From Octopus sinensis (taxonomy: Eukaryota): a stretch of DNA of 64,000 nucleotides. Position 1 is the first letter of the stretch. Every line of letters begins with the position of its first letter. The position numbers and the translations under genes are program-made. A model generated the notes under the pieces. The model worked only from the letters and a program-made list of their open reading frames with translations, made no database searches and was not told the origin of the DNA. Of this stretch, positions 50,001-53,000 are shown piece by piece. The DNA lies in contig NC_043009.1 of NCBI RefSeq assembly GCF_006345805.1, positions 34,286,001 through 34,350,000 on the forward strand. Direction: 5' to 3'.

Positions 50001-53000
50001 CGCCTCATTTTTTATTTTTATTTTTATTTTTATTTTGATCAATTTACTCCACCACCTACACCACCAAACGGTATACACAGGTGCTTATAATTATCAAGTA
50101 CTCACCCCGAATTTCTACACTCAACTATATTATATATATATATATATATATATATATATATATATAGGTGAATGAATTATCCTATGTTTATCGTCAGCAT
50201 GGAAAATTCGTTTAACCGAAACCTGGGTAGCAAATTCACGTCAGAAACACGGCTGAAGCGACCTGTCCATATATATATATATATATATATTATATATATA
50301 TATATATATATATTGATACAGTCACAATATTCTCAAGGTTTTTTGTGGCTAATCAGTAACTGTAATTACATTTAGCTATAAAATAAGACAAAAAATATTA
50401 TTTTATTGCTTTTGATTTTAATATTGGAATTGAATGGCATGTTAGTAGGGCTCTCACCTGCCAGCAGAAGGTTCATCAGCTCATACCCTGACAATGATAT
50501 TGTGCAGTGTTTATACAATTATAAAATGTCATGACCATTCAATTGTATATAGGTATCATGTGCAGGTTTAATTTACTGCTATAAATCATGTGAGCTGTGT
50601 GTATCAGACGTGTTTGGTTAGCTTGAAGTATTAAGCTAATATTTTTCCATGGATTTTGAGAAGTTCAAAATAATCAAAATTTCCTTGTGACCTTGTTGTT
50701 AAAACCACAACCTTGAATCACTGTCTAAATAATGAAAAATTATATTCAGTGGTTCCCCAAGAACTCAATGGGTTATGGAGTATTACTTTTTACTTCTCTA
50801 ATTTATGTAAACTTTCTTCAATTAAATGCTTCTCTGTTTCAGAAAAGTGTAGTGCAAGCTGTTATTGATGTGACTAATGAACGGCCTTGGCTATGGGCCG
50901 TATTCATTGTTGTTGTTTTGCTTCCTATTGTACTTGTTATTGCCTATTGCTGTGTAGGCAGCTCAGCAAAGGTAAGCTTTCCCTTTGAAAATAGCTGGTT
51001 TGCATTGCATGCAGCTGCATACCCAGTTTTTTCTTTATCTTCTAAAATACTAAAGCCTTTGTGTGTACATGAAAAATGTGTGTGGCTCTGTTTAAAGCCC
51101 CAGTTTTTCTGTGCAATATAACTTACTGCTCTTGGAGAATATGTCTGGATATTAAACCCATTTCTGGACACTGCTTAAATATTTGTGACTAACGCCTCCC
51201 TTCCCCAATGGCAAGATATTTCCCTTTCAGCATTCTACTTATCACTGTCTCAATGATTCATGTTTTGTCACATTTAAAAAAAAAAATTTGGTTTTGTTTT
51301 CTGTACACAGGAAAGTAACTATTTCATGATGTTGATGAGTAAACTTTCATTTGCTGCTGAAGACAATCCCTGGTTAATTGTTACATATGGAATGATTATT
51401 GTCATTCCTATCATACTAATGTCTCTCTACATTATCTCTAGAGGAGGGAATCAAGAGGTAGTTTATGTGTTGTGGCTGCATTGTCCAGTATTTTCTCTAC
51501 TAGTTGCAGTAGTTGCCCAAGTATAGCCTTCACATTGCTTTTTACTCCTATTTGCCTCTCTCCGATATAATTGTTCGTTCAAAACCTGCAGTTTAAGTAC
51601 CCCACTGTTAGATGTAGTCATTATATTGTTTTTGTGCACAGGTTAAGAATTTTGTTAATGTTAAGAATTTTGCAACTGTGATCCAACTTCATGGCAACTT
51701 AGGGCAGATGTCTTCTACTATAGCTGTAGGTTGATTAATATCTTGTCAGTGCTGGGAAACTGTCATTATGTGTATCTTTCTATACTGGTCAGACAAACTG
51801 GTGCTTTACAAATGAAGACCTTTGAAATATTTGTTCTACATGAAGTTTATAGATACACCTTTACTACTTATTCTTTCAGAAATAGAGTGAGCAGTGGTTG
51901 GCCTGTCAAAAGCTTGTAGCTACCAATGCTCCAGTTGTGATATATAAAACATTATATACAAGTACTGCAAAGTAGTAGTGAACTCTATCTTGGGCTGAGT
52001 TTGTGGTGAAACTTAAATTACCAGCTGACATATAACACCATGTACATGCTATTTTCAGTGCCTATCAAGCTAGTCCTCCTCAGATAAGTTGGAAGGATGT
52101 ATCTTGGTTTGTTTACTCCATTATGGCAAAGTTTCTGTTATTGGATGCCCTTTCTATACAATTCAGAGTATACTTATTATGATACTAATACTACAGAGGT
52201 TACTTTGTTCCCTGCAAGACTAAAAAGTACTCTTGGCTTTACATTCAATGCAAACATGACCAAGAATGTGAATAGGAAAAGTGTGATAATCAAGAGGGTG
52301 AAAGAAGCAAGATTATAACTATCATGGTGCAAACAGGGTGGTAGGGGGAAGTGATAGGGAGACTAACCACTATAGCACTAAATTTTCCCAGTTTTCAAAG
52401 TAGTTTACATCCTCAAATCTTGTCCTCTCCCAGCACATTTCATGTACACATCACTGGCACATTGTAATCTGTTCGTGTTTCTCTTTACCAGCAATGATAT
52501 TGTACATATATGTGTGAGTGTTGTGCGAAAGAGAAATGCTATAACAAAACTTTGCACTAAATATTTACCTAGTATCTACTATTTTGAATGTATATCAGAT
52601 GTAATGTAAACATTATTAGGGTACTGTCATAAATTCTGTGACTTGTAAATGTTTTGTTGAGGATCCTTATAAATAATGAACACAGTCATTTTCATGAATT
52701 TTAATGTTAAATGATTTTAGTCTATTAATAAAAATAACCCAAAATAGTCTGATGAATGAATAAAGAATTTGTTTCCTGAAAGAATTTCTAAACTAATCCC
52801 AATTTAAGAGACTATAAAAACAGCTGCTGTTTTATCATATTTATTAAGTTGGTTTCAGTTTTGTTGTTTAAATAAGTTATATATTTAAAGATTTTCTTTG
52901 ATGTTAAATGGAGTTGAAAGAAATATAAATTAGAACAGTTAAAACAGAATGGTGTTTGATATGCATATATATTATTATCTCAAAGAAAAAACTTCTGATC

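Follow-up and report, generated by a model that had tools for sequence, protein, structure and literature searches.

A tandem pair of transmembrane exons in the calnexin gene of octopus and other molluscs

INTRODUCTION

Does the gene for calnexin, a type I chaperone of the endoplasmic reticulum (ER), encode two alternative versions of its transmembrane (TM) anchor, and if so, what protein does the second version make? We address this question for a 64,000-nucleotide (nt) stretch of the genome of Octopus sinensis (RefSeq assembly GCF_006345805.1, contig NC_043009.1, positions 34,286,001 to 34,350,000 of the forward strand), referred to in its full length as the window, in which the calnexin gene contains two adjacent TM exons, 18a and 18b. 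An initial annotation, made from the letters of the window, drew attention to these exons; here, we analyzed them using profile searches, protein models, and comparisons with other octopods and with more distant animals.

In mammals, the TM helix and the cytosolic tail of calnexin govern where the protein works (at the translocon, at ER-mitochondria contacts, or at the cell surface) and which membrane clients it serves, and this regulation is thought to be post-translational. Cys502 and Cys503 of mammalian calnexin are palmitoylated by DHHC6, which directs the protein to the ribosome-translocon complex and to ER-mitochondria contacts, and the tail contains an RKPRRE retention motif as well as PACS-2 and CK2 sites (PMC9913998, PMC4765739). 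Our analyses support that 18a and 18b are probably the octopus copies of an ancient tandem pair of alternative TM exons, and that 18b is modeled as a read-through end that would generate a calnexin without a tail.

RESULTS

Two tandem TM exons in the calnexin gene of O. sinensis

Using O. bimaculoides proteins as a guide, we assembled a coding model of 21 exons. Preceded by the five residues MKTPS, which are assigned to an upstream first exon not placed in the window, the translation of this model matches exactly the 645-amino-acid (aa) calnexin isoform X1 of O. sinensis (XP_029643966.1), confirming the exon numbers 17, 18, and 19 of the initial annotation. The Calreticulin family domain (Pfam PF00262) is matched over its full length (1-369/369) at residues 90-460 with 547 bits, and this is the case for the X1 and X3 products alike. 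The isoform containing 18a has a hydrophobic N terminus, judged by eye to be a signal peptide. Its only TM helix is C-terminal, contains PWLW and a Pro in the middle, and is followed by an acidic tail and a basic C terminus (..RRRRSRKD).

The last base of exon 17 is at 46100 and the first of exon 19 at 53200, both boundaries being in phase 0. Between these exons lie 18a, with 129 nt or 43 codons and a strong donor (ttcag/AAAAGT...GCAAAG/gtaagc; slashes mark splice junctions), and 18b, with 147 nt or 49 codons and a weak donor (acag/GAAAGT...CAAGAG/gtagtt), both in phase 0-0. As initially described, each of these two tandem exons encodes a juxtamembrane segment, PWL, and a Pro-containing TM helix; the coordinates proved exact, and the AG/GT sites are present. 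The Pro residue is positioned exactly 11 residues after PWL in both exons, and both have TM-grade hydrophobicity, with a Kyte-Doolittle maximum over 19 residues (KD19) of 3.21 for 18a and 2.38 for 18b. Like mutually exclusive exons, 18a and 18b are adjacent, homologous (see below), in the same phase, similar in length, and only 339 nt apart. Because both lengths are multiples of three, inclusion or skipping of both exons would not be eliminated through a frameshift.

Exon 18b is a diverged member of a second type of calnexin TM exon

Direct identity between 18a and 18b amounts to only 7 of 43 residues, so that their likeness alone is weak, and homology was tested independently; it proved to exceed chance. 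For this, we used profile hidden Markov models (HMMs) of two types of calnexin TM exons, A and B, that were built from non-octopus sequences only. The six frames of the window contain 903 open segments of 35 aa or longer. When these were scanned with the B-type HMM, we obtained scores of 46.9 bits for the 18a open reading frame (ORF) and 24.0 bits for the 18b ORF (E 1e-6), while the next best segment reached 10.7 bits. When the two HMMs were compared, 18a was classified as A-type (89.9 versus 51.1 bits; margin, 39) and 18b as B-type (26.2 versus 16.4 bits; margin, 10). Both exons were also matched in a tblastn search with a human calnexin sequence (E 0.006 and 0.013). In a phmmer search of all libraries, 18b together with its read-through tail (see below) matched the B-type segment of Mya arenaria calnexin and not the A segment; no further cephalopod copy was found in this search, and the cephalopods compared here are Octopus and close relatives. 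Identity to exons of the same type in other species is ~30% for 18b and 65-77% for 18a.

The match to the non-octopus B-type HMM, the retained AG/GT sites, and the use of 18b in RefSeq models bear out the proposal that 18b is a genuine paralogous TM exon. By sequence comparison, it is the octopus orthologue of B and strongly diverged. We also considered that 18b might be a chance ORF or a conserved noncoding element of the intron rather than an exon. Its low identity to 18a would fit with this idea, as would the finding that no synonymous changes are present among octopods (see below), which is also expected of a conserved noncoding element. However, 18b is besides 18a the sole match in the window to the B-type profile, B is found at the corresponding place of the tandem in four other loci, and RefSeq models splice precisely into 51311 in two species. 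We therefore regard this explanation as effectively refuted and extremely improbable.

The A/B exon pair is present outside octopus

The exon order 17-A-B-19, with all exons in phase 0-0 and flanked by AG/GT, was identified in Tegillarca granosa (L005) and in three loci from ENA assemblies (L009 to L011). A protein model of Mya arenaria (P0106) contains two consecutive TM segments, of which the first is much like 18a and the second is of the other type (..GAAEERPWLYAVYVVVLLLPIVLLSICLCPRSGPI). Spliced products in which B is joined to exon 19 (..KPED..KKTD) comprise P0127, P0019, and the gastropod model P0005 from Batillaria; A-type spliced products comprise P0126, P0128, and P0025, and the A-19 junction is present outside octopus in P0126 and P0128. 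The A-type product P0128 and the B-type product P0019 were considered as an isoform pair of one species and rejected, as their mutual identity is only 46%. The donors of B exons are nonconsensus at every locus examined, in octopus and elsewhere.

The pair is, thus, present in three octopods, T. granosa, the three ENA loci, and M. arenaria. It is not a novelty of octopus; an A/B pair is found in bivalves, and B-type use is found in the gastropod model. These comparisons indicate that the pair is ancient in molluscs and that B has been coding since before the bivalve-cephalopod split.

In P0106 as well as in the T. granosa model P0227 (KUTeg_023945; L005 11573-12696), A is joined to the whole or part of B, and two TM segments are predicted. 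As a point for annotation, these models probably concatenate both exons wrongly, i.e., they are probably errors caused by the exon pair. In L006 (10061-10333; Logan SRR23372228), exon 17 runs directly into a B-type TM segment without an intervening A exon; this is either a contig derived from spliced RNA or a genome with a fused exon. Look-ups of P0106, of P0018 from Exaiptasia, and of P0033 from a mosquito yielded no genomic locus.

Farther away, the spider Stegodyphus dumicola has two tandem phase 0-0 TM-type exons (L013 45223-45345 and 45917-46066). The upstream exon (SWWKWMLRKTNNHPYIWLVYLIYCAIPIVIYFIHLRSRVKE) lies ~570 nt before the canonical TM exon, is diverged, and lacks a juxtamembrane CC. 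This pair either shares its origin with the mollusc pair or arose by convergence. In the sea cucumber Apostichopus japonicus (L012 8559-9140), three further copies of a part of the TM exon occur with a spacing of 155 nt, two of them being identical and one differing at two residues; we rejected this locus as a comparable case, and it probably reflects either a recent tandem repeat or an artefact of the assembly.

Octopus transcript models splice exon 17 to 18b and read through the 18b donor

To follow the use of 18b, we examined the RefSeq isoforms in the 90% cluster holding X1, which comprises O. sinensis X1 to X4 and O. bimaculoides X1 and X2. Among these models, 18a is the only one of the two exons in O. 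sinensis X1 and X2, and 18b is the only one in X3; no octopus model contains both. In O. sinensis X3 (XP_036364191.1; P0248), the last residues of exon 17 (..QEKSSISG) are joined straight to ESNYF.. at the acceptor at 51311, and 18a is skipped. O. bimaculoides X2 (XP_052828346.1; P0247) has the same architecture, with ..SSISG joined to ESSYF...

Downstream of 18b, both models continue through the donor for 22 codons until an in-frame stop, ending in ..(L/I)LVAVVAQV in the two species. The stop codon is the same in O. bimaculoides X2, and the ORF to this stop is kept in a third octopod, so that read-through of the 5' splice site leads to a stop common to the three octopods, as in a composite terminal exon. 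X3 lacks the acidic tail and the C-terminal basic motif. The 18b donor (GAG/gtagtt) has neither +4A nor +5G and looks by eye to be the weakest of the 21 in the gene. The read-through tail itself is TM-grade hydrophobic in the three species, and its KD19 of 2.31 ranks it among the highest 0.5% of intronic windows without a stop. Two AATAAA hexamers, which are candidate poly(A) signals for a transcript ending in 18b, lie 1.2 kb downstream in AT-rich DNA; both are also present in O. bimaculoides, which is uninformative at a divergence of ~6%. In O. bimaculoides, a segment of ~4.7 kb (L004 39221-43931) that is absent from the 18b-19 intron of O. sinensis (corresponding to window position ~52363-52369) sits between 18b and these candidate signals.

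Two of the remaining isoforms also have alternative 3' ends. X4 (XP_036364192.1) reads through the donor of exon 17 into an open frame of 67 codons, giving a calnexin without a TM segment; its alternative C terminus is at 46249-46296 (region 46101-46296). O. sinensis X2 (XP_029643967.1) ends in ..EVEKVKNRCC, for which the region downstream of 53475 would be the place; an uninterrupted VKNRCC was not found in the plus-strand frames of the window, and this alternative 3' end may be split by an intron or fall outside the window.

As the modeled 18b transcripts read through the donor, the documented product is a tail-less calnexin and not a full-length calnexin with a swapped TM segment. The mutually exclusive swap that had initially been proposed is borne out by the models on the upstream side, where exon 17 is joined to 18a or to 18b and 18b replaces 18a in X3 and O. 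bimaculoides X2, while on the downstream side no model splices 51457 to 53200. Exact 17-18b-19 products, searched for with three N-terminal variants, were absent from a collection of 15 billion proteins and from the RefSeq isoforms of both Octopus species. Going by the models, the choice of 18b by exon 17 is real. No product other than the tail-less one is documented, and a full-length 18b isoform may exist.

18b is conserved among octopods, and its recent changes are all nonsynonymous

We aligned the locus of O. sinensis with those of O. bimaculoides (L004) and of a distant octopod represented by Logan contigs (L001 to L003; 66-aa ORF P0001). Across the three species, identity is 97.7-99.2% for 18a and 96.6-98.0% for 18b (97.7% and 97.3%, respectively, to the most distant octopod), while the flanking introns are 77-85% identical to those of the most distant octopod. 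The 339-nt intron between 18a and 18b has 85-94% identity between octopods. In 18b, 4 of 147 nt differ from the most distant octopod, and ~22 would be expected at intron rates (binomial P ~1e-6). The ORF, the AG, and the GT of 18b are intact in all three species; hence, the exon has been neither lost nor disrupted in these relatives, as the initial annotation had anticipated for an exon in use. All rate comparisons for 18b rest on six substitutions in total, and these six are all conservative replacements (N/S, S/N, F/L, V/I, M/L, and R/K), none being synonymous; the probability that all replacements are conservative under random mutation is ~0.003. A single change falls on the long branch, for which ~18 are expected.

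Several observations weigh against the interpretation that 18b is currently maintained as the coding, read-through end of a calnexin isoform. The first group concerns the exon. In 18b, five nonsynonymous and no synonymous changes separate O. sinensis from O. bimaculoides, which amounts to a near-intronic rate, and the density of its nonsynonymous changes is ~5 times that of the constitutive exons (5/147 versus 4/577). Five of the six changes are on the two short branches to these species, which make up ~32% of the tree (P ~0.014). Only nonsynonymous changes at a near-intronic rate imply that current constraint on 18b at the protein level is weak, and the pattern suggests a recent relaxation or diversifying change on the short Octopus branches. 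The notion that 18b is highly diverged and yet under selection, thus, applies to the deep branch and not to the recent ones.

These same data raise the possibility that 18b is decaying or nonproductive in octopus, in which case transcripts containing it would be scarce, incompletely processed, or unproductive, either as noise or as a down-regulating "poison" event that yields no functional protein isoform. Consistent with decay, 18b has moved much further from B than 18a has from A, the modeled transcripts end in unconstrained intron sequence, and the sister isoform X4 is likewise the product of donor read-through. On the other hand, the intact ORF, AG/GT sites, and TM-grade hydrophobicity in three species, the strong constraint on the long branch, the conservative nature of all replacements, and the coding status of B since before the bivalve-cephalopod split are difficult to reconcile with a decaying exon, and we consider this explanation unlikely.

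The second group of observations concerns the read-through tail. In the 69-nt extension, 12 positions differ from the distant octopod, which is the intron level, and identity falls from 97% to 83%, again the intron level, exactly at the 18b donor. In a neutral simulation, the tail stayed open and hydrophobic 9% of the time. With a divergence at the intron level, the 22-codon tail looks unconstrained, and this is a better fit to a cassette exon than to a terminal coding exon. Accordingly, 18a and 18b could be strictly mutually exclusive cassettes that are both spliced to exon 19 and generate full-length calnexins differing only in the TM and juxtamembrane segments, the 18b form being non-palmitoylatable. 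Besides the sharp end of constraint at the donor, this reading accommodates that both exons are phase 0-0 and a multiple of three in length, that the GT at 51458 is kept in the three species at the same position as the B donor elsewhere, that B is spliced to exon 19 in other species (P0127, P0019, and P0005), and that 18b has no Cys in the three octopods. It is at odds with the lack of 17-18b-19 among the RefSeq isoforms and of the exact products in the protein collection, with the poor donor, and with the juxtamembrane Cys kept by all non-octopus B exons, which means that an on/off difference is not a conserved one. We regard the strict cassette arrangement as possible but doubtful.

Finally, the evidence for the isoforms comes from protein models made by Gnomon, and such models may stem from RNA that was only partially processed; only one of the four supporting non-octopus genomic loci has a named species (T. 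granosa); and outside octopus, no single species yielded both an A-19 and a B-19 transcript. Taking the evidence on both sides together, we still consider the ancient tandem pair with 18b as a read-through, tail-less end the probable explanation.

The juxtamembrane Cys residues do not explain the exon pair

In the initial annotation, the pair was put forward as a candidate palmitoylation switch, based on the lack of the juxtamembrane Cys pair in 18b. This lack is confirmed: octopus 18a encodes YCC, and octopus 18b encodes no Cys in any of the three species, so that at the exon level one isoform has Cys residues and the other does not. Outside octopus, all nine A exons have YCC or CCC; however, all nine B exons likewise have one or more juxtamembrane Cys residues where the helix meets the cytosol (CLCP, FLCP, or WCCP), and the Cys difference is, consequently, not a conserved distinction between A and B. 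Because non-octopus B exons retain Cys, its loss cannot be the reason why the pair is maintained, and a palmitoylation switch does not account for the conserved pair. Moreover, the X3 read-through tail brings one Cys back (HCP/HCA). A Cys on/off switch would be at most a peculiarity of the octopus lineage.

Candidate mechanisms for exon choice

An inverted repeat of 28 nt with 82% complementarity flanks 18b, with predicted energies of -24.7, -20.1, and -25.6 kcal/mol in the three octopods. This repeat could loop out 18b. By ungapped stem score, the stem is weakly above the window background, with 13 of 150 sites of the same geometry scoring as high. Energies of RNA duplexes between whole introns were uninformative, as duplexfold spans whole sequences. 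Steric hindrance was rejected as an exclusion mechanism in octopus, since the 339-nt A-B intron is too long. In two of the ENA loci, the A-B intron is ~60 nt (L010 10808-10867; L011 ~4703-4762); this might reflect steric exclusion or be the normal intron size there.

Features of the locus

The features described above are listed in Table 1. The window is AT-rich, repeat-rich eukaryotic DNA. The introns of the calnexin gene contain repeated ORF fragments resembling reverse transcriptase or retrotransposons (e.g., at 22783-22935, 27571-27792, 34855-35106, and 38299-38586) and numerous simple repeats of the (TG)n/(TA)n type.

Table 1. Coordinates of features in the window
Feature	Position	Strand	Remark
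Calnexin coding sequence, MFLRK start to stop	13884..56091	+	21 coding exons
Exon 17, last luminal exon (...QEKSSISG)	45954..46100	+	Phase 0-0, donor GGT/gtaagt
Exon 18a, A-type TM exon (ERPWLW...IAYCC)	50843..50971	+	Used in RefSeq X1 and X2
Intron between 18a and 18b, 339 nt	50972..51310	+	
Upstream arm of inverted repeat, candidate looping-out stem around 18b	51093..51120	+	
Exon 18b, diverged B-type TM exon (AAEDNPWL...), without Cys	51311..51457	+	Used in RefSeq X3
Read-through of 18b donor, 22 codons plus TAG (51524-51526)	51458..51526	+	C terminus of RefSeq X3
Downstream arm of inverted repeat, candidate looping-out stem around 18b	51781..51808	+	
Two AATAAA hexamers, candidate poly(A) signals for 18b-terminal transcript	52727-52732, 52759-52764	+	
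Exon 19, start of acidic cytosolic tail	53200..53475	+	Starts in phase 0

DISCUSSION

Based on these results, we propose the following scheme. Exon 17 is spliced to either 18a or 18b, as modeled by RefSeq in two octopus species; 18b is the copy of type B, whose consensus is ..AAE.RPWL.AVY..LLS.CLCP... When 18a is chosen, its consensus donor is joined to exon 19, giving canonical calnexin with the CC palmitoylation motif, the acidic tail, and the C-terminal basic motif. When 18b is chosen, its weak donor, which is read through in the only modeled transcripts, would bring the protein to an end 22 codons further on; the 3' end of this transcript would presumably form within the 18b-19 intron. This predicted product retains the luminal chaperone domain in full and is anchored by a different TM helix, free of Cys, after which comes a short hydrophobic stub containing one Cys. 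It would lack the acidic tail, whose mammalian counterpart is assumed to bear the phosphorylation and PACS-2 sites, as well as the terminal basic motif. Judging from mammalian calnexin, such an isoform would be expected to take another sorting route, inside the ER or outside it, and to offer its clients an altered TM surface. A junction of 18b with exon 19 would correspond to the ancestral mode in other molluscs and may also occur in octopus.

If an ancient and conserved pair of TM exons is indeed present, many invertebrates would set part of the control of calnexin by splicing. The two anchors and the tail-less form of octopus would also be natural variants with which the separate contributions of helix, Cys motif, and tail could be dissected. 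More speculatively, two calnexin anchors could predate the bivalve-cephalopod split and, considering the spider, possibly be spread more widely in protostomes, with the TM segment as a regulated module of the chaperone instead of a passive anchor; the octopus B form, having become tail-less, without the basic motif or a juxtamembrane Cys, and possibly anchored as a hairpin, could then leave the cycle between rough ER and mitochondria-associated membranes or leave the ER. We consider this broader idea rather improbable as a whole.

The initial annotation knew of no description of alternative TM exons in calnexin. This holds for the literature that we searched, in which no paper links calnexin to tandem exon duplication; the searched literature on mutually exclusive exons describes no alternative calnexin TM exons, a paper on scallop calnexin does not mention isoforms, and neither "splic" nor "isoform" occurs in the text of a 2023 review on calnexin (PMC9913998). 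It does not hold for automated RefSeq annotation, in which O. sinensis X3 and O. bimaculoides X2 contain 18b. The real alternative exon pair is, therefore, undescribed in the searched literature and present only as unremarked automated isoform models. The type of event is well known; its phylogenetic reach is deeper than initially supposed, and the modeled product is a different one.

The octopus 18a isoform shares with mammalian calnexin the PWLW, mid-helix Pro, and juxtamembrane CC of the TM region as well as an acidic tail and a basic C terminus, whereas an alternative TM exon has not been reported in mammals (PMC9913998). Vertebrates have two versions of the chaperone with different juxtamembrane residues, FCC in calnexin and FCW in calmegin; these arose by gene duplication, whereas the octopus pair is a duplication of an exon within one gene. 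The A and B profiles do not cleanly separate human and calmegin-like TM segments, and orthology of calmegin and B is not implied.

Among known types of alternative exons, the calnexin pair resembles tandem-duplicated, mutually exclusive exons in that the exons are adjacent, homologous, of the same phase and similar length, and part of one gene, in that the pair is ancient and phylum-wide, and in that the transcript models contain one or the other, the exchanged part being a structural unit, here the TM helix (PMC8373072, PMC9741552, PMC9013439). It differs in that both calnexin exons are a multiple of three in length and in that the second octopus exon is documented only as a terminal read-through. 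The latter feature brings it close to composite terminal exons, in which non-use of a weak 5' splice site extends the ORF by a few codons and alters a C-terminal anchor or tail, with AATAAA downstream. The textbook composite terminal exon is that of the secreted and membrane forms of immunoglobulin mu, which depend on splicing versus intronic polyadenylation. Unlike those, both calnexin forms are membrane anchored, and the poly(A) signals here are candidates. A further parallel is provided by the tail anchors TA1 and TA2 of SLMAP, where splicing swaps anchors with different hydrophobic profiles and targeting is reported to change (PMC2712456). Unlike calnexin, a type I chaperone of the lumen, SLMAP is cytosolic and tail-anchored.

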